64,000 bases of DNA from Epithemia pelagica (Eukaryota > Protista > Bacillariophyta). Under the pieces are notes generated by a model that did no database searches, was not told where the DNA came from, and saw only the letters and a program-made list of their open reading frames with translations. A program made the translations under genes and the position numbers. This document shows, one piece after another, positions 3,568-58,394 of the stretch. The stretch lies in assembly GCA_946965045.2 (NCBI GenBank), contig OX337239.1, positions 1,364,001-1,428,000 of the forward strand, given 5' to 3'. Position 1 is the stretch's first letter, and each line of letters begins with the position of its first letter.

Positions 3568-4165
3568 ATTTTTTGACAAGGATGTCCGCAATCCATAATC
3601 TGCATACACAATTCTGGACATCGTAGACTAGCTTTCCTGGAGTCTCCACATTTAAGTTGCCTTGTGTGCCCACAACTCTCGAAACGGTAGCTTATCAACT
3701 TTTCGCAATTGTTGGCAAAGTTCTGGAGAGCTTCGTCGTTGCGGGCTTCTCGGCATTCAATGTTTTCGGCAGTATGACCGCACGGGAGCTCCAGTGGTCC
3801 AATGTTAAATTGGCAAGATTGTGACGTTTTCTCGCACTCATCCCCGCATGATCCACACCTGATATCGCAGCAAAGTCGTCAGTCAAACGAACAAATCAAA
3901 GTCAACGACAAGATATCATACCTTTGTCGACAAGGATGTCCGCAGTCCATAATCTTCATACACAATTCTAGACACGGAGGACTACCTTTCCTGGAGTCTC
4001 CACATTTTAGTTGGCGTGTGTGCCCACAACTCTCGAAATGGTAAGTTATAAGCTTTTCGCAGTTGTTGGCAACAAAGTTCTGGAGGGATTAGTCATTGCG
4101 GGCATCGTGGCATGCAATATTTTCAGCAATATGACCACATGAAAGCTTCAATGGTCCAACGTCAA
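3568..4165 (-). repeat. Tandem duplicated NF-X1 finger exon module (~3568-3805 vs ~3922-4165)
   Basis: GPLKLSCGHIAENIACHDARND*SLQNFVANNCEKLITYHFESCGHTRQLKCGDSRK versus GPLELPCGHTAENIECREARNDEALQNFANNCEKLISYRFESCGHTRQLKCGDSRK. Both modules end at a phase-2 intron. Confidence 0.85.
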
Positions 4166-7100
4166 CTTGGCAGGAACCGCATTCCTGATAGCAACGTTTT
4201 GTACACCTATGACCACGTGGACATTGCTCCGGTACCCGCGAACATGCCTCCATGCATTTATTTCCCTTATGACTTCTGCCTGTTGGGTGACAGAACTGAA
4301 ATTCGAAGACAACGTAAGTTGTAGAATCAACCAAAAGACAGCGTGAGTTGTAGAATCGACCAAACACAAGAATACTTGGGGAGTCTTACTTTCGGGCAAA
4401 TATGTCCACATTCGAGACGGTACATGCATATCCGGCCACAACCTCCATCCGGACGATAGTCTCTAAAATCCTTTCTTGAAAATAAGGCCATCGGTGGATC
4501 TGCAGGGTGAATCTGGCATGTGGTAGGTAGACCTCTAACAATATGGCCTTCCTCGTCTAGCATCTCAAGAATAGGGCCCCATGTCCTTTTCCCTTCGCCG
4601 CCTGAAAAGGTCTTGGCATTACCAACAAGGATCATACCCTTCCGAGCCCGGGACAAAGCCACATTTACTCGTTGAGGCTCCTTCAAAAAACCAACAGACC
4701 CACTAGCATTGGACCGAACCAAAGAAATAACGACCAAATCGCTTTCTTCACCCTGATAATTATCAACTGTAGAGCATCGGACACTACCTCGTTGCTCTCT
4801 TGAGCACTTCGACAGGAAACTTTCGTGCTTCTGTTCATCGAACTTGTCCAGGTCTTAATCACTTACGTTCGCTTCGACATCCTGTAAGTGGCGCTTCATT
4901 TCAGTAACGATTTTGAATAGCTGGCCCTGATAAGGAGTCAAAACTACTATATCATCCGTTTTGTAGCCTTGAAGTAAGAGAAATCTTACAATCTCGACAC
5001 ACATCATGGCCTCGTATTTATTGGACTTTGTGGATACGCGACGACCACTATCTCTTGAATCAAGTGGTGATCCATCTTCCTTGTGGTCATGATCAATGAA
5101 AAGGAGATTTTGGGATATCCCGCGAACGTTAGGGTATTCCTGAACTGACGGATGATCGACCAATGTTGGATATGTCTGTTCTCGAATTAGTCTCGATATT
5201 GATGGCCTCATACGATGCTGCACAGCAAGGGTAGCTGAAGGGAGACCACATCGTATAAGTCGCTCGAACAAAGACACGTCTAAATTGTATCCGTTACCGA
5301 AAACGGCTCGGAGATGATGAGTTTCAACTTTCGGACGCAGCTGCATGTGGTCACCAATGAGTACCAGATGCTTTGTTGCAGTGGAAAGTGAAGCCAACAC
5401 ATGCGCCTCCAGAACTTCTCCAGCTTCTTCGACAAATACAATTGACGGAGAAACTTCAGACAATACTTCACGGTATCTCGCGGCACCTGAGGTTGTTGCA
5501 CCAATGATTCTTGCATCCCGAAGAGTGCTTACGAAAGTTTCGTTCCTTGCTGCTTCTCGCTCCTTCACCATGTTACAGATAGCGTTACACGTAGTTGCAA
5601 TGACCCCCTCCTCCAGCGAAAGACAAACTCGTCCCTTTGTTGTTGGGGTTGTCTCCAAAATTCATCCATACCTTCTGGAAAATCGTCCATGAATGGAAGC
5701 ATGGAAGGAGGAAATTCTTTTCCTTTCTTCCATTCGTTCCACAGAAAGTCCGACTCATACCTCCCGTCGCAGGCCGAAGGAACATGCGTATACCTGTACT
5801 GGACTGGATAGTTCTTCCGTAGAACAAGGCTCAAATTATTCCACAAATCGCGCTCTTTCAGAACTTTGAGCGAGCTTTCAATTTCACGATTTTTCCGAAC
5901 CAATACTCCATTATGTTCAGCAATATTTTCGATTTGGTAGCTGCCAATCCGATCTGACTTTGACCTCCCCCCTAACCAGACTATCCGGTTTTCGCCAGAA
6001 TCCAGCATGTGCTCTAGGAACTGATCCAAAGCGTGATTGGTAAAACAGACGCAAAGGATCTTCTCATCTGAGTTTGTCATGACAAGCTGCGCGAGAAGTC
6101 CACCGAGGAATGTCTTCCCTGCATTCAACGCAAAACGACAAGGAAACCAGTCAAATACGCTAACCAGCTACGCAAAGCCATCTTGTTACCCCTTGGTGCA
6201 GTAATACATACCTGTTCCTGGCGGTCCTTGGATCAATGCCACGCGATGTGTTAGAGCGTGAACTACCGCTTCAGCTTGTGACTCGTCGAGTGATGTGTGG
6301 GTACTGATATCCGCAGCCGATAACTTGTCTAGATCAAACTTGTGACCATGAAAATTATGATCTTCAGGAAATGCTAGTTCAGGTCGCATGTAATCTATTT
6401 GTGCCTTCGCCGTTTCCTTATCGTCCTTTGCATCGGTGTCATCTAAAACTCTCTTTCGACCGCGAGATCGGCGAGCTGTGAGCAACTCCTCGGAAAATGG
6501 AATGTCCTCCATTTGCTGCAATGCCTTGAGAACTGATTTATTTGCAAAGAAGGATTTGGATATTTCCACCATTTCATAGGTCGTCATGTTTGCCACAGAT
6601 TCCGCGGCAAGTTGATTGTTTTTCTTCAACAAACCCTTAGTGTCTTTGTCATAAAATTTAGAGTTTTTGGCCAGTTCCAGGAACGACTCAACAACTGCAG
6701 TAGGGTCTTCAAACTCGATTCCTAAGAGAGGACCATCTGCAGTGCACAACCATTCTTTCCTTCTAATAGAAACAGTGCCGGTCCGGACCAACCGGTGATC
6801 GTCCTTGTCCAGAAACTCCACAATGGATCCCTTCAACAAGAACCTGGCAGTATCCCAATCCGCTACCGGCGAACTTGGAGGATCTACTTGAAGGAGAAAG
6901 CTAAATGAATGCTCTCCACAGGGATCAGCATCAATGATGCGAGCATTTCGCCATGTCGACTTGCGTTCGATTATGCCTCGGCGCATGCAGCCGATGGAAT
7001 CTTCTCGCAACAACCGGAAGTTTGCATCAAGAAACCGATCTACCGGAGCATCTTGAATGACGGCATTTTCACCACTTGCCAAGGGAAGGTAGGGTGGAAC

Positions 7101-48328: not shown

Positions 48329-50199
48329 GTTATTGGTTGGTTGGCTTGCTCTAACTTAGTTACGGGTGAGAAAAATGAAAGGACTGATATGTGCAACAGG
48401 GAGCAGTTCGGATTGGGTACGTGGTGTGGATTCGGCAACGTTGTATCGGCACAACTGGAGAGACTGATATGAATGAGACTCGCAGCTCTAACCTTCACGT
48501 AAGACAATTCAAAAACAGAAAAACACAACGGTGGCGTTGTCGATCGCTCTGTTTGGCTTATGGGGGTAGGAATGGAATGCAACGATTTTGGAACCGGTTG
48601 ACTGGTAGTAGTAGGTGGTAGCAAAGGTGTGTAGTCGTTGGCTTCTTTTTTCCAAACCACCACATCGACCACAGAAATGTGTGCGTGTGCAGTTGATGAT
48701 GGATGGCGGCAGCCTCCGATAGTCATTCGGAAGCGGGGGTGACGTGGAAAGAGGCGAAAAACCCAAGCGAGTGCGCATGAATCCAGAAACGTGGTGGTAA
48801 TAGAAACAATGAGTTGGCAAATGCCGCGAGAGTGTAGACGATGACGCGGACCTTTCACGGAATCTTGCACATGCACATGTCCTCCCAAAAAGATACCATT
48901 TTACTTCTTGACGATCCACCGATGATCAAAGACTTCTATTTTCTCTTGTCACTTGTCATTCCGTTGTTGTGGAACTGATGTGGTTTGGGTCGGTCTCCAC
49001 CTTCCTCTCACCATCGATCCACTTGCTTGGTGCCAATGAGCCTTTCGTCGCATATCTATAATCTCCTATTCCGGAAAGACAGTTCATCTTTGCGTAGTGC
49101 CCGGTGAGTCTGTGACAGCACGAACTCGCACCTCATACAGTACAGGCTGGAGCTCTCCACAACAGAGTCTACATGCGCTTGTTACCTTGTAGAACGTTAG
49201 TCATCATTGGACCCGCAATCGAGTCGGCGCCTATCAGAGTGAGAGCCATAGTATCCGTATCTCTGATAAAAGCAGCACAAATGTGTTTGTAGGTACATCG
49301 GGTTCCTACCTTTCTTCTCCTACGAGGTTTGTTGTAGGACCATAATTCGTCGGTACATCCAGCCGAACCCTCTAGTAGATCTAATGTTTTCTAGGAGTAC
49401 CTTCGAACATGGTCCATCTTCGGTCACCACCTGGAGCTGGAGGTACTAGGTAGTTGTAGTAGGTGTAGTACTCCTAGAAGTCGGAGAAAGACGGACGACG
49501 GACGAGAGAAGCATAAGAGCGATTAGAAAGCGACCCAAAAAGAGGGGGGGTGGCCATGACGCAACACGGTTCGTGTTGGACGCCGTGTTGAACGCCATAT
49601 TAATTCTTAGCTTTCACGAAGAAATAGTTTCATAGGATGTTCGAAATATGGGCTACTTCTATATCGATGGGTAGTACAGGAAGAGAGGGAAGACCGACGA
49701 GCACATGCATCAGTGATTTCCGAGAAGGAAGCTGTTCATTCTCGGAAAGCGGAGATTTTGTATATGGATCAATGAGTAGTCGGCCTATGATGGTGTCGTT
49801 CGTGTGATGTCGTCGTCTGCTGGAAGTCATGTCTGCTGTTCTCTTTTCGGGAGATGTCGAGCGTGTCTGTGTTGTGGTCTTCTTTTTTCCGAGTTGATTG
49901 CATTGATTGATCTCTGGATGGTTCATTCTTCGTTTGGGATTGCCTTGTGCATGTTCTTGTCTTGTGAATGCCACTATTGAAGCCTTTGTCCTTGGAACGC
50001 ACGCACCAGGATTCCCCTTCACGAGATAGTAGAGACTGTGTGGTCATTGCAAAAGGAAGCCGACGGGGAAAGCCTTTCTTCGTTGGTAGTTCGTAGTGCT
50101 CGCATCCTTTGGTTGTTTAGTGGCTGATCTGAACGAAAACGACAACCACCAAGTGTGGAAACAACGATAAACGGCAAGAATAAGAGAAAAGAGGGTAAA

Positions 50200-51681
50200 A
50201 TGGCGAGCGAGGAATTTGTCACAATGGAGAGAAACAAACGGAGTTTGTTCGCACGGCGCCAAGACCACGTTTCGTGGCGGTGGTTGCTGGCAATGGCATT
50301 CCTACTTGTTCTATTCGGAAGGGCCCAATCTCATGACATGACAACCACCATCTCGACGGCCTTTGTAGGACATTTACACCCTGCCAGAACAGCAAGAACA
50401 ACACCATTGACCCAATTGTCCGTCTCATCGGTCCGTCCACCACCGGCGACCACGGCGATCGAATCGGCACCTTGTCTCTTGTCCTCCTCATCCTCCACCC
50501 AACTCTTGGTTCCTTCATCGGTTTCGTCGAAATGTCCCTTTTCTCGTTTCTTTGCCCGCACGAGAATACACCGCCACAAACAGTTAGATCATCAACAACA
50601 ACAAGATACAAAGGACGAAAAAGAACAGCAAACCAGTTTGTCGCTGATCCAACCGGCGACCGTACAACATGCTTCTGGATGGCATACCATATGGATGTGG
50701 CAGGAACAATCCTATCGTCGAGCACTGGCCTTGGCTTGCCCCTTTTTGCGACGGCGAGCGTCGGATGGTTTGGACCTGATCGATCAGGTACTCCATCTGG
50801 TCTGGAGAAGCAGCTCGACATTGTCCTCCACACTTGTATTGAATCACAACAAGAAGAGTCAGAATACCATGGACTGGATTCCTATTGCTTGGAGACGTGG
50901 TCCGGCCATTCAAGCCACACAACAACACCAGCAACATCACTATCATTCACGTGCCTTTCAATTGGCACCTCTCACCACGCAACAATTGCAAGAAGCCCTA
51001 CTGGTGGATTGGAAGGTACCTCGTGTTACAAACGACGAAAGTAACCACCCGACTGGAGAAGAGCACTTCAACAAGGGATATTACATCACGGGGCGTCTCA
51101 ATACGACACTTTATCATGGCGATTGTACCTTTGAAGGACCAGATCCAGATTTGCCCATTCGGGGAGTACGCAAATATGCGCGAGCTGCCGCTCAATTGTT
51201 TTGTTTCGACACCAGCTGGGCTGAATTGCTCTCGCTACAGGCCATCACAGAAACAAAGGATCCGGAAGACCCACAAGAAGGACAGCAGCACAACAAGGCG
51301 CAGGGAGATTCGCGGAGTCGTCCTACGTTGATGGCAACCTGGCGATTGCAAGCGCACTTGCGTTTGCCCTGGCATCCACCCTTACCCTTGGTATATGGCA
51401 CAACTACCTATTATACCCATGTCCAAACGGGGCGCATCACGCATCATGTCGAAAGCTGGGACAATTTGACACCCTGGCAAGCCTTTGTACAAACCCTCCT
51501 GTTGCCCCATCAAGTCACTGTCGTGGAACCACCACCGCCAGTGTTAACAACCAAGTGTGTTCTCGAAGATTCTACAGCAGCTCTGATTACAAAACCACAA
51601 CAACGAGGAGTTTTCCAAAATCCACAACTTGACTCCTACTCACGCATGAACATTGTGTCAGTGTTGTCGGAACCGCCGTGA
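50200..51681 (+). CDS. DUF2358 (SnoaL/NTF2-like) domain protein, probably organelle-targeted; start uncertain
   Basis: FEGPDPDLPIRGVRKYARAAAQLF...WRLQAHLRLPWHP...GTTTYY...GRITHHVESW matches the DUF2358 pattern. Hydrophobic N-terminal signal. Confidence 0.7.
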   Translation: MASEEFVTMERNKRSLFARRQDHVSWRWLLAMAFLLVLFGRAQSHDMTTTISTAFVGHLHPARTARTTPLTQLSVSSVRPPPATTAIESAPCLLSSSSSTQLLVPSSVSSKCPFSRFFARTRIHRHKQLDHQQQQDTKDEKEQQTSLSLIQPATVQHASGWHTIWMWQEQSYRRALALACPFLRRRASDGLDLIDQVLHLVWRSSSTLSSTLVLNHNKKSQNTMDWIPIAWRRGPAIQATQQHQQHHYHSRAFQLAPLTTQQLQEALLVDWKVPRVTNDESNHPTGEEHFNKGYYITGRLNTTLYHGDCTFEGPDPDLPIRGVRKYARAAAQLFCFDTSWAELLSLQAITETKDPEDPQEGQQHNKAQGDSRSRPTLMATWRLQAHLRLPWHPPLPLVYGTTTYYTHVQTGRITHHVESWDNLTPWQAFVQTLLLPHQVTVVEPPPPVLTTKCVLEDSTAALITKPQQRGVFQNPQLDSYSRMNIVSVLSEPP

Positions 51682-52141
51682 ACAGTAGGCGCACCTTTGG
51701 TTTTTGCCCATTTGTGTACAGCAGAAACAAAACTGAATCGTTTCGGAAAAAATATTAAAACAAACATCGATGGACGACTCAGGCCAACAGAAAAACGTCA
51801 CCACAAACCGACAAACAAAAGACTCAAGACCAATCTCCAGCTACAAACACCAGAGCTATTTCGTCTAGAAAGTTCAGCGGTTCGAAGGCAATGGCTGCTC
51901 CAATGTGAGAGAGGACAAGCGACACTCGAACGACATCATGCGTAAATGTGCTCCGCGTCATTATGATCTTTAGAAGCTGCATCCATCAGAGCGTGTGCAT
52001 GTGCATGTATAAATAATACCTCTATAGCTATAACATCGGTTCTTTAACGAAATGCATGATCTCAACTACCTGACACTTCGATCCAGTAAGAGGAGGAAAC
52101 GATCTTTGTACATGTAATCGTTCAGATTCACGACAATAAAA

Positions 52142-54659
52142 CTACTTTCGAGATTTCCAGTGCTCCTCATTTTCTCTCTTAATCCAAGCACCATAGCCAC
52201 TACGGTTTTCACAAAACATCATGTGGTTTCGCCATTCTAAATGCTCTTCGGCAACTTGGGCAATATATCGATAGGCCTGAGGACTGACACGATGGACCTC
52301 TTGTTGAATCTTATTCCAATCAAAATCGGAGCTAGAAGAAGACGAATCTTTATGAATGCTGGAAAGCTTTTGTTCCAAGTTCTCGAGCTGCTCATCCATC
52401 TCTTCAGAAAGAATTCGGAGACCGTTCTCGTCCGAAATGCCACCAGCTGTGCCCAACTGTGACAGCCAATCCGGTAAATCCAGCGACATACCAACGGCCA
52501 GACGAATGAAAATGCGAGTCAAAAACAAGGACGCCCTCAAAGCTGGAGCAACTGTCTTCAACCACTTTGTATCTCTTTTCAGAACAATTCCTGGACCAAC
52601 CTTTGATTGGTCGTGGGAGCATAAAAAATACAGAATATAGATCCGTTTGGTTCGGAAACGTGCTCTATTGAATCGACGTGGTCCACGAGATTCCCTTGGC
52701 AGGGTGAGAATATAGAGATTGGGACATTTAAGTTGGCCTTCTGCATGCTGCGCTCGTGCCCTGGCCGCAGCCAAGGCATACTGCTTCTGCTCCCGTGCCA
52801 GTGAGTCTACTACTTCAAACACTTTCGTTTGAAACACGTGGTCGACCGTTTTCTCCCGATACCGCAATTCGAGTTGCTCACGCTCCTTCTGTTCTATATC
52901 TCGCTGATGCTGAGATACCGCTGCAAAGTGATCGGCCACCAATGCGGGTTCCAGGATCTCCGCCAACTGATGCATTGTAAAGGGGTTCGATAGACAGTCA
53001 CCTTTTCGACAAATAATCTGAGGCGAACCAAGATTGCTTTTCACGTGTTGGGCAAAACAGTGATTGCAAAGGAAATGGGGCCTGAATGCTCGATTGCAAT
53101 TTATCCCTTGATCACCACTTCGTCCACAGGACTGACATATTCCTCCTTTGCATGTACTTGAAGCCGAGATGCAGCTTATTGTGCTGGATGTCAAAGTCAC
53201 TTCAATGGTCGATCTCTGCTCGGATGTGGCTTCTTGAGCACATCGGGTTTTCAGAGCCAGCAATCGGTCAAGACAAGTTGAAAATGTTATGCGTTCGTCT
53301 CGCCGTCCCTTGGGACAAACACAAGACATAGTCATTTCTACCACCTCGTTCAGAATCGTAGCTTTCCACCCTGGGATTTCGTATTTTGCTTTCTTCACCA
53401 GTGTTTCGAATGGGAGCGGTACATCTGTGGGCAACGGAAGCTTTCCTGTCAAAAGAGCCTGCAGGACAAACCCAAAAGAGTATACTTCACATTTTTCATC
53501 AAATGAATGTTGACCATCCATGTACTCGGGGGCCACATAAGGCATGGACCACCCAAGCATCTTTGTAGTAGTGGAGGAGTGTAACCGAGAGTCGTCGACA
53601 AACTTGGCAAGACCAAAGTCAATCAACATGACACGTTCTAGATCGTCCGTGAAACAAATGTTCTGTGGTTTCACATCACGGTGAGAACAACCTGATTTCC
53701 ACAGACATTCCAGTGCTGATGCAATCGATAGAGCAACATCAAGCCGTTTCCTCCAGTCAAATTGAGACATTTTTACATCTGCTGACGCATTGAGCAAATC
53801 TGCCAAGTTGCCACCGCCTGCATACTCATAAACTAGGCACCACATGGAGGGGTCATTTTCCGGAAGGGAGTACCCCAACAAACGAACGATATTGTCATGC
53901 CGAAGTTTTGAGAGACCCTTAATGCCAGACAAGAGAATAACATCAGATAGAATTGAAACAGAAATTCTAGGCGTCGTGGCAGTGCATCGATCTTACCTGG
54001 ATTTCATGAACAAGTTGGTGCCTTAGTTTGCCCTTCTTTTCCATTACAACATGTGCAAAATGCTTCTTTATCGCAAAGACTAGATCATCATCCTTGTCTT
54101 TCACTCGACCCACGTATACCGAAGCAAAACCTCCCCTACCTACTTCCCGATCTTCCGAAAAGTTTTCTGTTGATGCAACAAGAAAGGAAGGAGCAACTTC
54201 CTGCACGTTGTCTGGTACAGACGACTTGTATGCCTCAATCAGTGTTTGGCGGCTTTGTTCGTATTCTTTAGGACGCAGGTATTTTTTCTGAGAATCCAAC
54301 TCTCTACGACACAGTTCCTGAACCTCATTGATCTTTTTTACAATGGGAATCCGTTCTCGTAGACTGCACTTCGCCTTTTGGGCATGTAATGAGTTAAGCT
54401 GTAGTTGAAGTTCATGGTAGGAGGGGAAATCCTCACTGTCGCAAAGGGCTTCCAGCTGCGGCAACAATTCCTGTGCATTGGCTGCGCGGTCCAGAAGTTC
54501 AATGTCATGTGTATCGAGCGTCACCGATCCCAGGTCCTTGTTTAATTGTTCAATGTGATGGTCTAAATCTGCGCGTGTCGCATATCGGATGCGGAGTTCG
54601 CCAACCGATTGGCTGCCCCGCAAAGACAGTTTTGACTCGTCCGATGATGCAACTGAAAT
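52142..54659 (-). CDS. IRAK/Pelle-like protein kinase plus RING-type finger, coiled coil and ROCO/TORNADO1-like C-terminal domain. Exons 54659-53997 and 53917-52142; needs an upstream exon
   Basis: GRGGFASVY, FAIKK, spliced HEIQ|GLSKLRHDNIVRLLGY, LVYEY, WRKRLDVA, HRDVKPQN, IDFGLAK and YVAPEY. Then CxxC..C..H..CxxC..C..C. No in-frame ATG before kinase subdomain II. Confidence 0.85.
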
Positions 54660-54761
54660 CTACAGTCAGTACATGAGAATAGCGAACAGACCACATGAGG
54701 AAAAAAGAGAGTGAGAGAGCAGATAAATTTTGATGGCATATACACGTCTCTGGCGCGATCT

Positions 54762-55901
54762 TCATCGTCTTATCTCTTGACCTTTCGTGTCGTCGGCCTC
54801 TCCCTCGTGAGGGTCAACGAGAGCTACATTGAGAAATTCCACCGACGAATATTCCTTGTGACCACCACATACCACCAGCCTCAAATTCTCATCCGCATCC
54901 TTGTCATTTCTTCCTGTCTGCAGTAGTAATACCATGGAGGGCCATCGCCGTGGCACGGACAGATCGGGGAAATAATACTTGACTCGTCGTTTGGTATCAA
55001 TCACTTCGACCGATTGCAGTTGTTTGCTTTTACCATCAAATCCGCCCGCCACTACCAAACAAGAATGGGATGGTCCTACGGACACGACAGCACGTGAATA
55101 ACGAGGAATACGGAGTGCCAGTGTTCGATGCTCCTTCCAAAGCTTTCCATCCACCAACGGCGATATGGATGGGGGAAAGAGAGGACATGGCTTGCGATAA
55201 TCTGGCCTACTTTCCAAATTCTTTTCTTCTTCTTCTTCTTCTTTTTCAGCAACATCTTGGACTGTAGCAAGTTCGATAGATCGAACTCGATTCAAGGTTT
55301 GATTGAATTTGGGTTGGAATCCTCCCACAAGATACAATTGATTGCCAATCACGGCTGCTCCCAAACTACGACAGGTGTTGGGCATCTCGGGCCCCGCTCG
55401 CAGTAAGGTTGCGGTAGTTTTGGAAGCCGTATCTACAATATCCATCTTGGGAGATGATGATGATCCTCCCACAATGACAATCCACCGATCCTGGACAACT
55501 GTAGCCGCCGAGAAGGACCGACCATGGGAAAATCGACAGGGCATTGGCTGCCATTGTTTCTCCCAGGATGTCATGGCCTTGAAGGTAGCAGGTGGAAGTG
55601 TAGGATCCAAGGCTGAAACGAGAATGCGTTCCATCGAATGAGGTCCACCGCCAATGGCATAGACATGCCCATTGCAGAGCACGGCACACAAACCTACTCG
55701 TGGCCGATGCAAGTGGGGACCCGTCTCCCACTTGTGTTTCGCTGGATTGTAAATTTTTACCGAATATCCCTCGGAAAGATCCATTGTCATGGTATTGGCT
55801 GTTCCTCCCATGATAACAATGCTTTGTTGGTCGGGCAATACCACCGAAGCATGCAGCGCGCGAGGTTGATAGCCAAAATCGGGATACAGGGTTCGGTCCA
55901 T
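54762..55901 (-). CDS. Kelch-repeat beta-propeller (possibly the N-terminal exon of the kinase gene)
   Basis: Six GG-containing blades (IVIMGG, VYAIGG, IVIVGG, LYLVGG, VVAGG, VVCGG) with R..a....v..-type leaders and W/P ends. Confidence 0.85.
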   Translation of the reverse strand: MDRTLYPDFGYQPRALHASVVLPDQQSIVIMGGTANTMTMDLSEGYSVKIYNPAKHKWETGPHLHRPRVGLCAVLCNGHVYAIGGGPHSMERILVSALDPTLPPATFKAMTSWEKQWQPMPCRFSHGRSFSAATVVQDRWIVIVGGSSSSPKMDIVDTASKTTATLLRAGPEMPNTCRSLGAAVIGNQLYLVGGFQPKFNQTLNRVRSIELATVQDVAEKEEEEEEKNLESRPDYRKPCPLFPPSISPLVDGKLWKEHRTLALRIPRYSRAVVSVGPSHSCLVVAGGFDGKSKQLQSVEVIDTKRRVKYYFPDLSVPRRWPSMVLLLQTGRNDKDADENLRLVVCGGHKEYSSVEFLNVALVDPHEGEADDTKGQEIRR

Positions 55902-56537
55902 TTGTCACCCCTGTTGCGGAACTGCCAAACCTGATTTCCGTGCCTCCATTATTTGATGATCCAATGGCTTCAGTATGGTCGTTGTTCTAGAAATGATCCT
56001 TCAATTTGCAGAAACACTCTGCTGCGCTGGATGTGGCAGAAGAGTTTTACGGTCAGCTTCTTTTCTTGTTCTTATTTTTGGTTGGCTTCGTCTCTTGTCC
56101 AGTTCGTGGACTGCAGCGGCAGTCTCATTCTACACGTCCTTTCTTTCGGGAGCTGGATCACTAGAGAAAATGAAAATTGGCACTATACTTGTGAAGGCGT
56201 GTTCCGGTGCCTTGTACGAGCCATCTCCAATCGCAGCCAGAGGTGCTTCTACGAACGAACCTTTCCAGAATAGATCTTCATATTATATCTTTCGAGAAAT
56301 ATGGAGCTGTTTCTACTCCCCCGGCGCGCGCTGTTTGATCCCGCAAAATGATACCAACTATGAAATACATACAGAGGATCGATGCGTTAGAGGAGAGAAG
56401 ACGACTCTTTCGCGCAGGGCGACCAATGAAACAAGCTCGGGACTGACAAGTCTCTCATGAATACGATTCGTCAAACGACCCCCTTCTTCCAACCGACCAA
56501 GGACAAAGAAGAAAAACCAGCGACAGACTGATACTCG

Positions 56538-58394
56538 ATGAACAAACCACCAGCACAGTTGGTCGGAACAATAATGAAGGTGTTCCGCTGGCCAAATAGA
56601 CTCGAGAAGAAACTACCACCATGTGCTGCTGCTGCTCTCCAAAAGACATTGGCCGCATTGGTGTTGGTGGCCCTACTGTCCATTTGGATGGTTCAACTGC
56701 AGGCATCCTCAGTCATGACACACGAGCTAGCAACCGTTTCCTCCTGGTCCGACACGACCACCACCACTGGCACCTACTTGTTGTTGGCGCAAGGACCACA
56801 TCGAATGACGCTTGACAACCGCAACAAGACAAACCACCACAACCGACTAGTCAATGAGGCGGTGTTCTCACTTTCCACTCACGTGACCACCACGAAAAAC
56901 AATCGCAACCCGTCGTCTCAATCCCACTCGGTAATATCATTCGTTCGTTCTGCCACAGTCGAGAATGCCCTTGCTTTCCAATCTTGGAATGCTAGTCGTA
57001 CTGCACCTAATAATGGCGAACCAAGGTTTCGTTTCAATCATACCGAGGCAAAAAAGATTGGTTGCTGCAATACCACCGGTCATGTTTGTTTAGACACGTG
57101 CTATACCCAAGCAGCCTGTGACGATTCGTCTCTGTATCCCTTTGCCTCGGTTGCGGAACAAGAGTGGTTGCAACCCGCTCCGGGACGACGACCGGGACTT
57201 CGACTCTTTTGCAAACAGTACATGGACCAGGACCCGGTACATCATCCTGACCATCCAACCAAAAATGACAAAAAGAATTCGACGACAACAATGGCAGGCA
57301 GGATGACGACGACAGATTGGTGCCCCTTCTCCACTACGGCAACCGATCGCAACCGCACGGCAACAATGACATCCACAAACAAAGTCGATTTGCTCTCCAA
57401 GATTCCCATGGGATGTAGTAAATTTTCCATGGGTGGACGATCCGGTCCCTTTGATCGTACGTTGCTCATCCCACGTGGTAAGCTTGCCATTTGTGGAATT
57501 CCCAAGGTGGGCATTACGCAATGGTTCAAATTTGCCCGATTCCTTTTGGGTGCCGCCGATTATCAGAGCATTCCCTACAACAAACATGATTTGGCTCCCT
57601 TCTTCTTGGAGAAACTACCCCGACATCGACAAGAAGAAGTCTTGAGCAGTCCAGAATGGACGAGGGCCGTCTTTTTTCGAGATCCAGCCGAACGTCTCTT
57701 GTCAGCCTATTTGGACAAAGTTGTGGCAACCACCCATCGATTGCAGCGACGACAAGATGACCAAAACGTCGCCACCACCACCAACAACATCACGACCCCC
57801 AGCTTTGCGCAATGGGTCAAGTCCTTGGTCGACGAAACGTCCCAGCGTTGTCCGGACCATCGTGGTCCGTCGTGGTGTTGGGATCCCCATTGGCGTCCCC
57901 AAGTATATTCCTGTGGTATCAAACCACACACGACACATTCTTCTCTCTTGCCTCTGTTTGAATTTGTCGGAAGTTTGTCGCAGGCTGCCAATCACAGCAA
58001 GGCCTTGCTTCAAAACGTTGGATTGTGGGACGACCATGGTGCGCACTACATTTCGTCCCCCAAGGCACGACGATGTAAAGCACTCCCACCCAATCCCCAC
58101 ACACTGCTTCGCCGCCCACCGGGTGTTTCGGCTCCTGTTGGCTTTCAACAAAGCAGTCGGGGCAAGAACGATGGTCACACGACGGGATCTCAAAACAAAA
58201 TGGATGAGTATTATACACCGGAACTGTTGGCCTTGGTCCAACACTTGTATCATCAAGATTATGAGGTCTGGAATGCCTTGCAACACCCACAAAACGAGGG
58301 AAGGTGGGTTTCCGGTCACGTCTTGCAAGAACAACTCAGTTCACAGCACTGCCCTACGTCTGCCATGGCTCATGTGTCTGTGGTAACCGCATGA
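56538..58394 (+). CDS. Type II membrane carbohydrate sulfotransferase (Sulfotransfer_2-like)
   Basis: N-terminal TM anchor. 5'-PAPS motif CGIPKVGITQW, 3'-PAP motif FFRDPAERLLSAYLDK, and DPHWRPQ. Confidence 0.85.
   Translation: MNKPPAQLVGTIMKVFRWPNRLEKKLPPCAAAALQKTLAALVLVALLSIWMVQLQASSVMTHELATVSSWSDTTTTTGTYLLLAQGPHRMTLDNRNKTNHHNRLVNEAVFSLSTHVTTTKNNRNPSSQSHSVISFVRSATVENALAFQSWNASRTAPNNGEPRFRFNHTEAKKIGCCNTTGHVCLDTCYTQAACDDSSLYPFASVAEQEWLQPAPGRRPGLRLFCKQYMDQDPVHHPDHPTKNDKKNSTTTMAGRMTTTDWCPFSTTATDRNRTATMTSTNKVDLLSKIPMGCSKFSMGGRSGPFDRTLLIPRGKLAICGIPKVGITQWFKFARFLLGAADYQSIPYNKHDLAPFFLEKLPRHRQEEVLSSPEWTRAVFFRDPAERLLSAYLDKVVATTHRLQRRQDDQNVATTTNNITTPSFAQWVKSLVDETSQRCPDHRGPSWCWDPHWRPQVYSCGIKPHTTHSSLLPLFEFVGSLSQAANHSKALLQNVGLWDDHGAHYISSPKARRCKALPPNPHTLLRRPPGVSAPVGFQQSSRGKNDGHTTGSQNKMDEYYTPELLALVQHLYHQDYEVWNALQHPQNEGRWVSGHVLQEQLSSQHCPTSAMAHVSVVTA

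Follow-up and report, generated by a model that had tools for sequence, protein, structure and literature searches.

A kinase, RING-like finger and possibly ROCO-related tail cassette beside a Kelch propeller in the diatom Epithemia pelagica: a candidate member of an undescribed modular signalling family

In this study we describe a locus of Epithemia pelagica in which a protein kinase, a RING-like finger and a C-terminal tail domain (CTD) follow one another and, as judged from their sequences, form the conserved cassette of an undescribed modular protein family. The locus (52142-53917 together with 53997-54652 of the window, the 64,000-nucleotide stretch of contig OX337239.1 that was analysed) could be a functional member of a cytosolic signalling family, with an N-terminus most likely supplied by the adjoining Kelch β-propeller; we hold this reading tentatively, at not quite an even chance. 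Three copies of the cassette were found in the genome, and only that of the window locus is intact. The other two are both broken: in one (L002) the kinase is inverted relative to the finger and the CTD, and the other (L003) is a cassette fragment beside a copia element.

Layout of the locus, the Kelch propeller and the kinase

According to the ORF listing all elements between 52142 and 55901 lie on the minus strand (Table 1). Sequence searches were run exon by exon.

Table 1. Features of the Kelch-kinase-finger-tail locus (window positions).
Feature	Position	Strand	Remarks
Kinase C-lobe, finger and tail ORF	52142-53932	-	ORF listing
CTD	52145-52759	-	205 aa; no Pfam family; motifs CP.L..L.P, Y.LYFLC, VAP.L, W..M, AWVKK.N..W
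RING-like finger	52994-53137	-	C-x2-C-x9-C-x6-H-x2-C-x2-C-x15-C-x4-C; eight ligands
Kinase C-lobe	53249-53917	-	HRDVKPQN, DFG, APE; Pfam Pkinase 9.2e-29
Intron inside kinase	53918-53996	-	79 nt, GT..AG; HEIQ|GLSKLRH; confirmed by RNA-like contig X2
Linker and kinase N-lobe ORF	53967-54623	-	ORF listing
Exon: Ser/acid-rich linker, helical region, kinase N-lobe	53997-54652	-	GRGGFAS, FAIKK; no Met before the lysine
Candidate intron	54653-54781	-	129 nt, GT..AG, phase 1; would join Kelch to linker; retained in X2
Kelch β-propeller ORF	54762-55901	-	379 aa, six blades; TGA stop at 54762-54764
Alternative ATG (MKIAPET)	54763-54765	-	overlaps the Kelch stop as ATGA
Heterozygous SNP	54782	-	C>A (+ strand); contig X3, about half of X4 depth
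GAA-type simple repeat	55215-55256	-	encodes Glu-rich insert (EEEEEEEK) between blades 4 and 5
Probable 5' UTR	55902-56158	-	X2 reaches about 257 nt beyond the Kelch ATG on its 5' side

The Kelch propeller of the original prediction was borne out by Pfam (Kelch_1 5.9e-18, Kelch_6 1.7e-14). Its six GG-containing blades align with those of paralogues, the framework motifs are conserved, and an in-frame TGA stands two codons 5' of the ATG. At least about a hundred Kelch paralogues were detected in the genome, and about 100 of them align with the window Kelch at 30-36% identity; most are stand-alone proteins of approx. 400 aa that end soon after blade 6. A single lineage-specific clade (100/100 support) contains both the window Kelch and this stand-alone family, and both have six blades, but the two are only 33-36% identical, the window Kelch lacks the N-terminal leader and the C-terminal helix of the stand-alone proteins, and in the tree it sits on a long branch outside their tight clade.

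A 6160-nt RNA-like contig (X2), of which positions 3998-6102 align to 53996-56100 and whose end was extrapolated to approx. 56158, is continuous from upstream of the Kelch ATG to beyond the tail. As X2 also fuses the convergent neighbour gene, its continuity is no proof of a single transcript. On the other side a divergent sulfotransferase gene begins at 56538 on the plus strand. Within the kinase X2 skips 79 nt (CT..AC on the plus strand, cut +1), an intron that was absent from the earlier account and that occurs at the same kinase position in the relative L004. Since this intron is spliced in the contig, the cassette is expressed and processed.

The frame of the linker and kinase N-lobe is open upstream as far as a TAG (54660-54662). 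Its first Met lies 3' of the FAIKK lysine, so that, as had been predicted, no ATG precedes kinase subdomain II. The kinase looks active, with the GRGGFAS, FAIKK, HRD, DFG and APE motifs all present; in our preferred reading it would be a Ser/Thr kinase of an RLK/IRAK-like type. Against PDB sequences the C-lobe matched SOBIR1 best (1.9e-24), followed by MELK (1.7e-18), ULK1 (4.5e-18) and IRAK4 (1.3e-17). The earlier assignment to IRAK/Pelle-like kinases gains some support from SOBIR1 and IRAK4, which are among the best solved relatives, but the scores of MELK and ULK1 are close to these.

The finger, the tail domain and their relatives

The eight ligands of the finger are invariant in 24 relatives and follow the RING order, with atypical spacings. 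A profile of the 24 fingers gave a weak match to ARIH1 RING1 (residues 168-237, E 0.008-0.01), with further weak matches to Z protein, TRIM2 and RNF8, and none of the Pfam RING models reached threshold on the finger. The Atlas feature search with finger plus tail likewise returned IBR/RBR clusters weakly (score 0.83-0.84), and the pattern 'I.C...GC.S.PFT' at the end of the finger resembles the end of ARIH1 RING1. We concluded that the finger is RING-like and, on weak evidence, nearest to RBR RING1; the C3HC4-like finger first proposed is supported by its invariant ligands and, weakly, by the ARIH1 match.

The tail motifs CPNLYIL, YFLCSH, VAPAL and LDLP are present as predicted, and the window CTD keeps all invariant positions, Ile replacing Val in AWVKK. 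Finger plus tail had no Pfam or NCBIfam match that rose above noise, and neither phmmer with the tail against PDB sequences nor a CTD profile search gave a match. Started from the tail, the word-index search returned nothing but the window's own protein; started from the long paralogue P0131, it returned nothing but P0133. No ROCO protein was therefore reachable by sequence.

An AlphaFold2 model of the CTD was alpha/beta (pLDDT 81.3, pTM 0.80); a single-sequence AlphaFold2 prediction of finger plus tail had a pLDDT of 37. When the CTD model was compared with the ESM Atlas, the four best family sets were all ROCO. Two of them were plant-dominated, with a TM by query of 0.65-0.66 over 174-176 residues and an rmsd of 3.8-3.9, and one set was named 'LRR-GTPase of the ROCO family'. 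Cyanobacterial ROCO sets had a TM of 0.56, and the next rows down were at 0.25-0.31. The Atlas feature search with the CTD alone gave no match, a solved counterpart of the CTD was not found, and solved Roc-COR structures were unmatched. Domain scans of the window's three ORFs, 27 whole CTD-bearing proteins and four locus ORFs detected neither Roc nor Ras, and Pfam COR-A and COR-B had no match at E<=1 in 46 CTDs. The proposed likeness of the tail to ROCO and TORNADO1 proteins is consequently supported in part, by a match of the predicted fold to some undefined region of ROCO models, but not as a Roc, COR-A or COR-B domain or as a sequence link.

A tail query gave 85 matches among 1.84 billion representative proteins. 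The window copy agrees with the definition of the cassette, having a kinase, then the eight-ligand finger, then a CTD with the CP, YFLC, VAP, W..M and AWVKK motifs. In L006, P0139, P0142, P0152, P0170 and P0187 a single ORF has ankyrin repeats ahead of the cassette. In other proteins Kelch, Deltex RING-DTC or ankyrin modules precede the CTD alone, and one diatom transcript has a TIR domain after the CTD. Kelch propellers of the same lineage as that of the window share single ORFs with a CTD in P0131, P0133, P0206 and P0201; three of these were scanned or compared directly, and P0206 was placed through its 90% cluster, which it shares with P0131, and a phmmer CTD match. In a metagenome locus (L007) the CTD closes a 1201-aa ORF that has no Pfam domain. 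An architecture of variable sensor, kinase, finger and tail, of the sort that had been suggested, does exist in these relatives; none of the 85 tail relatives was found to combine Kelch, kinase, finger and CTD, and a literature search found no published description of such an architecture.

The Kelch-to-kinase gap and the origin of the N-terminus

The Kelch ORF and the linker/kinase ORF share one frame across a 129-nt gap. Read-through of the Kelch stop was rejected because the gap contains three in-frame stops, the Kelch TGA and two more. A nested gene, with a first kinase exon 5' of Kelch, was rejected as well; the minus-strand ORFs that lie between 55901 and the sulfotransferase gene are all short (<=83 aa) and overlap the start of that gene.

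The splice that had been proposed would remove an intron from 54781, at the donor AAAG|GTCAAG, to 54653, at the acceptor TTTCAG|TT. Both sites are present, in phase 1, and the spliced model comes to 373+219+591 = 1183 aa, close to the predicted length of about 1190 aa. The splice itself was not seen: X2, the one RNA-like contig here, lacks the kinase intron but still contains the 129-nt gap, and no contig with the junction was found. As contigs drop minor forms, this indicates that gap-retaining RNA is present and probably dominant, and a spliced form may exist beside it. GTCAAG is a weak donor (C at +3, A at +5); the heterozygous SNP occupies its position -1 (G/T) and replaces Gly374 of the Kelch tail by Cys. 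We regard a Kelch-kinase fusion by removal of the candidate intron as possible, somewhat short of probable.

Several observations count for the fusion. The two frames agree in strand and register, the gap has GT..AG ends of matching phase, and the kinase frame is start-less. From YATRADLD on, the helical region of the linker has homologues in L004 (33% identity, E 1e-21) and L005, and it is internal in these relatives, whose ORFs extend a further 75 aa (L004) and 220 aa (L005) upstream. The relatives with ankyrin repeats and cassette in a single ORF, the single ORFs joining Kelch of this lineage to a CTD, the unbroken course of X2 across the locus, the spliced kinase intron, the intact open frame of the cassette, and the position of the window Kelch outside the tight stand-alone family point the same way. 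Against the fusion count the gap kept in X2, the weak donor with its heterozygous -1 G, the lack of a Kelch-kinase-finger-CTD protein among the 85 relatives, and a sensor-linker junction without intron in the relatives L005 and L006. With at least about a hundred Kelch paralogues in the genome, the adjacency of Kelch and kinase could also be due to chance.

The same evidence can be read as two genes, a stand-alone Kelch whose 3' UTR runs through the gap and a kinase-RING-CTD gene with its promoter within the end of the Kelch coding sequence, an arrangement that we consider somewhat less likely than the fusion. The kinase gene would start at ATG 54765, the MKIAPET first exon that had been named as an alternative, and a short intron (approx. 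54653-54743) would lead into the linker exon. The donor for it, ACGT|GTATAT (intron from 54743), is indeed in frame with the same acceptor, and the ATG has A at -3; this mini-exon splice is, however, equally unseen in the RNA-like contig, and GTATAT is no better a donor than GTCAAG. That the contig retains the gap would be natural if Kelch mRNA is the more abundant there, and the merged convergent neighbour weakens X2 as a witness for one transcript. Several ATGs in the 170 nt upstream would nevertheless confine the transcription start to approx. 54766-54870. Among relatives, the stand-alone habit of most Kelch proteins in the genome and the merely short N-termini before the kinase in P0153 and P0174 suit two genes, but in full-length relatives the kinase normally comes after some 400 aa of repeat domain.

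Quite improbable, in our view, is that the kinase-RING-CTD frame is a 5'-truncated relic, left untranslated on read-through Kelch transcripts from which only the Kelch protein is made. The missing in-frame ATG, the gap kept in the RNA-like contig and the broken state of both other cassette copies in the assembly would agree with a relic. However, approx. 810 codons are open across linker, kinase, finger and tail, with the kinase motifs, the eight finger ligands and the CTD invariants all intact; the frame-preserving 79-nt intron is still spliced; and the sole SNP within exons 2-3, CAA>CAG at 54255, is synonymous. The long branch of the neighbouring Kelch also argues that the arrangement is not recent.

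Under the preferred fusion, removal of the weak 129-nt intron would yield a 1183-aa Kelch-linker-kinase-RING-CTD protein, and intron-retaining RNAs would end at the Kelch TGA and give the propeller alone. The Kelch face may bind a partner, the CTD may self-associate as a ROCO-like scaffold, the kinase might then be activated in trans and the RING might recruit an E2. A wider proposal is that diatoms and other marine protists possess undescribed modular cytosolic sensors, in which ankyrin repeats or a fast-evolving Kelch stand before a kinase, RING-type finger and scaffold domain related to ROCO, with TIR and Deltex swaps, and that retention or removal of the intron decides here whether the product is the Kelch binder on its own or a kinase/E3 equipped with it. 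This is speculative and we consider it unlikely. An innate-immune role of the locus is something we only infer.

To our knowledge almost nothing is known of the means by which diatoms perceive viruses, bacteria or other partners. A cassette placed on interchangeable binding domains, and found near TIR and Deltex modules, is what one would expect in a signalling or defence family, and its tail is a defined new domain with a predicted fold in common with TORNADO1-type ROCO proteins. If the Kelch fusion is true, the large Kelch repertoire of the genome would be tied to an enzymatic output; if it is false, the locus still holds the only intact cassette found there.

Comparison with known systems

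Kinases of the IRAK/Pelle/plant RLK group (SOBIR1, IRAK4, BRI1, BIK1) gave the best solved-structure matches to the C-lobe. The window kinase differs in its HRDVKPQN loop, which is not the typical RLK form, and the protein has neither a death domain nor a transmembrane segment.

Arabidopsis KEG is organised as RING-kinase-ankyrin-HERC2-like and animal RIPK4/ANKK1 as kinase-ankyrin. They too unite a kinase and a repeat domain (in KEG also a RING) in one polypeptide, but in another domain order and without the CTD; the likeness is one of domain content and kinase fold.

With RING1 of RBR ligases (ARIH1/HHARI) the finger has the C3HC4 ligand order in common, whereas its C3-to-H spacing is 4-6 instead of 1-3 and its last pair is C-x4-C. 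RBR ligases carry IBR and Rcat after RING1; in the window protein helices and the CTD come after the finger instead, and neither an IBR match nor further Cys clusters were found 3' of it, so that it is not identified as an RBR E3.

A tail of this kind is not described in the brown-alga ROCO paper (PMC11378527). TORNADO1-type and cyanobacterial LRR-Roc-COR ROCO proteins are, like the family of the window, large and multidomain, with a repeat domain at the N-terminus.

Gene arrangement and transcript evidence

The elements of the original prediction were all found in the window, on the minus strand, and the Kelch, kinase, finger and tail lie in three successive ORFs (see the table). Its domain reading was largely right: the Kelch propeller and a kinase with all motifs were present and the finger looked RING-like by its ligands, but no Pfam RING model matched the window finger. 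Because GRGGFAS, FAIKK, HRDVKPQN, DFG and APE are all present, the kinase looks catalytically competent as judged from its motifs. As predicted, no ATG lies ahead of kinase subdomain II; the first Met of the second frame falls after the FAIKK lysine. An in-frame TGA lies two codons 5' of the Kelch ATG. All searches used exon-wise queries.

Features of the candidate gene and its neighbours (window positions)
Feature	Position	Strand	Remarks
Convergent ORF	50155-51681	+	Sub-threshold DUF2358 match
Kinase C-lobe, finger and tail ORF	52142-53932	minus	596 aa; Pfam Pkinase 9.2e-29
Intron inside kinase	53918-53996	minus	79 nt; GT..AG
Linker and kinase N-lobe ORF	53967-54623	minus	Frame open upstream to TAG 54660-54662; N-lobe weak in Pfam
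71-aa ORF	54550-54765	minus	Starts at ATG 54765; frame other than Kelch; spans candidate acceptor
Candidate Kelch-to-kinase intron	54653-54781	minus	129 nt
Kelch stop TGA overlapping next ATG	54762-54765	minus	ATGA
Kelch propeller ORF	54762-55901	minus	379 aa; Pfam Kelch_1 5.9e-18
Sulfotransferase-family gene	56538-58394	+	Sulfotransfer_2 1e-21; divergent from Kelch gene

Four sequencing runs of one study were used. Two (X1, X3) consist of long genomic contigs, from which the window itself may derive, X2 is transcriptome-like (39 Mb of contigs, longest 19.6 kb) and X4 is fragmentary, with three loose ends at 52518, 54982 and 55284. The end at 52518 starts with GATC, as at Hi-C ligation junctions, which suggests that X4 is Hi-C; the other two have no GATC start. 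Given these loose ends, depth steps in X4 are not biological.

The single X2 contig aligned to 52000-56100 omits exactly the 79 nt inside the kinase, which fuses HEIQ to GLSKLRH in frame and confirms this intron. The same codon is interrupted by an intron in the relative locus L004. The contig runs from ~49920 to ~56158 and ends in intergenic space short of the sulfotransferase gene, which fits an RNA origin. It also includes the convergent neighbour, implying overlapping 3' ends, and its continuity is therefore no proof of one transcript.

The candidate Kelch-to-kinase junction

Kelch and kinase had been proposed to form a single gene, joined by splicing of donor AAAG/GTCAAG to acceptor TTTCAG/TT. 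Both sites are phase 1, and the spliced model would have 373+219+591 = 1183 aa. The two ORFs share one common frame; read-through of the Kelch stop was excluded by three in-frame stops in the gap. The donor GTCAAG is weak (C at +3, A at +5), and the sequenced organism is heterozygous (G/T) at the donor's -1 base (54782). The proposal thus stood as far as a phase-matched, in-frame donor and acceptor are concerned, but the X2 contig keeps the gap and no second X2 contig with a junction aligned here. Contigs report the presence, not the absence, of transcript forms; the unspliced gap is probably dominant among transcripts, and a minor spliced form may exist beside it. Our tentative reading, plausible though short of probable, is that Kelch and kinase are fused by way of an intron whose splicing is inefficient or regulated.

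A start at ATG 54765, with donor ACGT/GTATAT and the same acceptor, is equally in frame. It would give a separate kinase gene beginning with a mini-exon, an arrangement that we regard as possible but would not favour. Retention of the gap would be more natural if a commoner Kelch mRNA overlapped the start of such a gene, but the mini-exon splice is, like the Kelch-to-kinase splice, absent from the X2 contig; any complete-kinase model consequently requires a splice that the contig lacks. That the kinase-finger-tail frame is an untranslated relic seems unlikely, and is weakly opposed by the single synonymous and zero non-synonymous SNPs in exons 2-3 (linker, kinase, finger and tail).

Related loci bear on the fusion reading. 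The helical regions of L004 and L005 are homologous to the window linker from YATRADLD on (33% and 28% identity), with the ORF continuing a further 75 aa upstream in L004 and 220 aa in L005, and in L006 an ankyrin domain, linker and N-lobe occupy one ORF. The linker is therefore internal in the cassette family, normally with a repeat domain ahead, which raises the prior for a Kelch fusion. Relatives have no intron at the sensor-linker junction, so that any fusion here would have arisen secondarily, by the former stop and spacer turning into an intron. Such an origin would agree with an intron that is weak and in part retained.

Around 100 proteins are related to the window Kelch (30-36% identity). 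Most of them are stand-alone, ~400-420 aa in length and encoded on long contigs that seem to come from one assembly, the sample having been checked only in the case of P0003. By alignment the window Kelch has six blades, without the family's N-terminal leader and conserved C-terminal helix. The tree placed it within a lineage-specific clade (100/100) and outside the tight stand-alone family (100/100), on a long branch, and sets no order relative to CTD-fused Kelch domains. This placement indicates an old, divergent copy, not a recent insertion.

Architectures of the cassette family

A word search with the tail matched only the window's own protein. An exhaustive HMMER search with finger and tail found 85 proteins at E<=0.001 (30 at E<=1e-10). 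In Pfam scans of hits and local phmmer mapping, the kinase, the finger and the 205-aa C-terminal domain (CTD) form a cassette conserved across relatives. Many hits of 530-570 aa start within the kinase and are ORF fragments split by the same kinase intron.

Ankyrin repeats precede the cassette in P0139, P0142, P0152, P0170, P0187 and L006, and the CTD alone in P0159. In P0178 and P0195 the CTD comes after two tandem RING-Deltex-DTC units, with no kinase, while P0145 and P0183 (2481 aa, MMETSP transcriptome) have two tandem CTDs and zero Pfam domains. A TIR domain follows the CTD of the cassette in P0136 (diatom Entomoneis sp. CCMP467 transcriptome; TIR_2 1.2e-09) and P0209 (JGI contig; the TIR scan covered P0136 only), which suggests that the cassette may be linked to TIR signalling. 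Kelch, a long helical region and CTD occur in P0131, P0133 and P0206 (placed as cluster mate of P0131), and Kelch and CTD in P0201. These four are on megabase-scale ENA contigs, apparently of the same assembly as the window; the sample was verified in three cases only (P0003, P0207, P0122). None of the relatives found combines Kelch, kinase, finger and CTD in one protein.

Among the cassette copies found in the genome, only that of the window is intact. In the paralogue L002 (5753-7978) of the same assembly, both kinase lobes are on one strand and finger and CTD on the other, which reflects either a misassembly or an inversion within the gene. At L003 (1678-7744), a copia-type reverse-transcriptase ORF (RVT_2) lies ~2.4 kb away from a finger-CTD fragment.

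Finger and C-terminal domain

Eight ligands are invariant in an alignment of 24 relatives (C-x2-C-x9-C-x4-6-H-x2-C-x2-C-x15-C-x4-C). The finger profile matches ARIH1 RING1 (E 0.008-0.01) and, more weakly, the RINGs of arenavirus Z, TRIM2 and RNF8; C2H2 fingers also match it, over the C-x4-C…H portion. No IBR or Rcat domain was found after the finger. From its sequence we take it for a divergent finger of the RING type, with putative E3 activity.

AlphaFold2 with a 46-sequence alignment gave a confident CTD model (pLDDT 81.3, pTM 0.80) of three strands, a helical bundle, a hairpin and a final helix. The tail had been likened to ROCO and TORNADO1 proteins. No CTD matched Pfam COR-A or COR-B, the CTD fold matched no solved Roc-COR structure, no scanned CTD-bearing protein has a Roc domain, and Foldseek against the PDB returned nothing (best E 0.18). 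The likeness nevertheless gained an independent fold-level match: in an ESM Atlas shape search the four best family sets were all ROCO clusters. Two are plant-dominated, one of Roc/Ras type (TM 0.65) and the other bearing the name 'LRR-GTPase of the ROCO family' (TM 0.66), and two are cyanobacterial Roc-COR clusters (TM 0.56); the remaining rows have TM <=0.31. We regard the CTD as an unannotated mobile domain; going by the modelled fold, TORNADO1-type ROCO proteins may also contain it.
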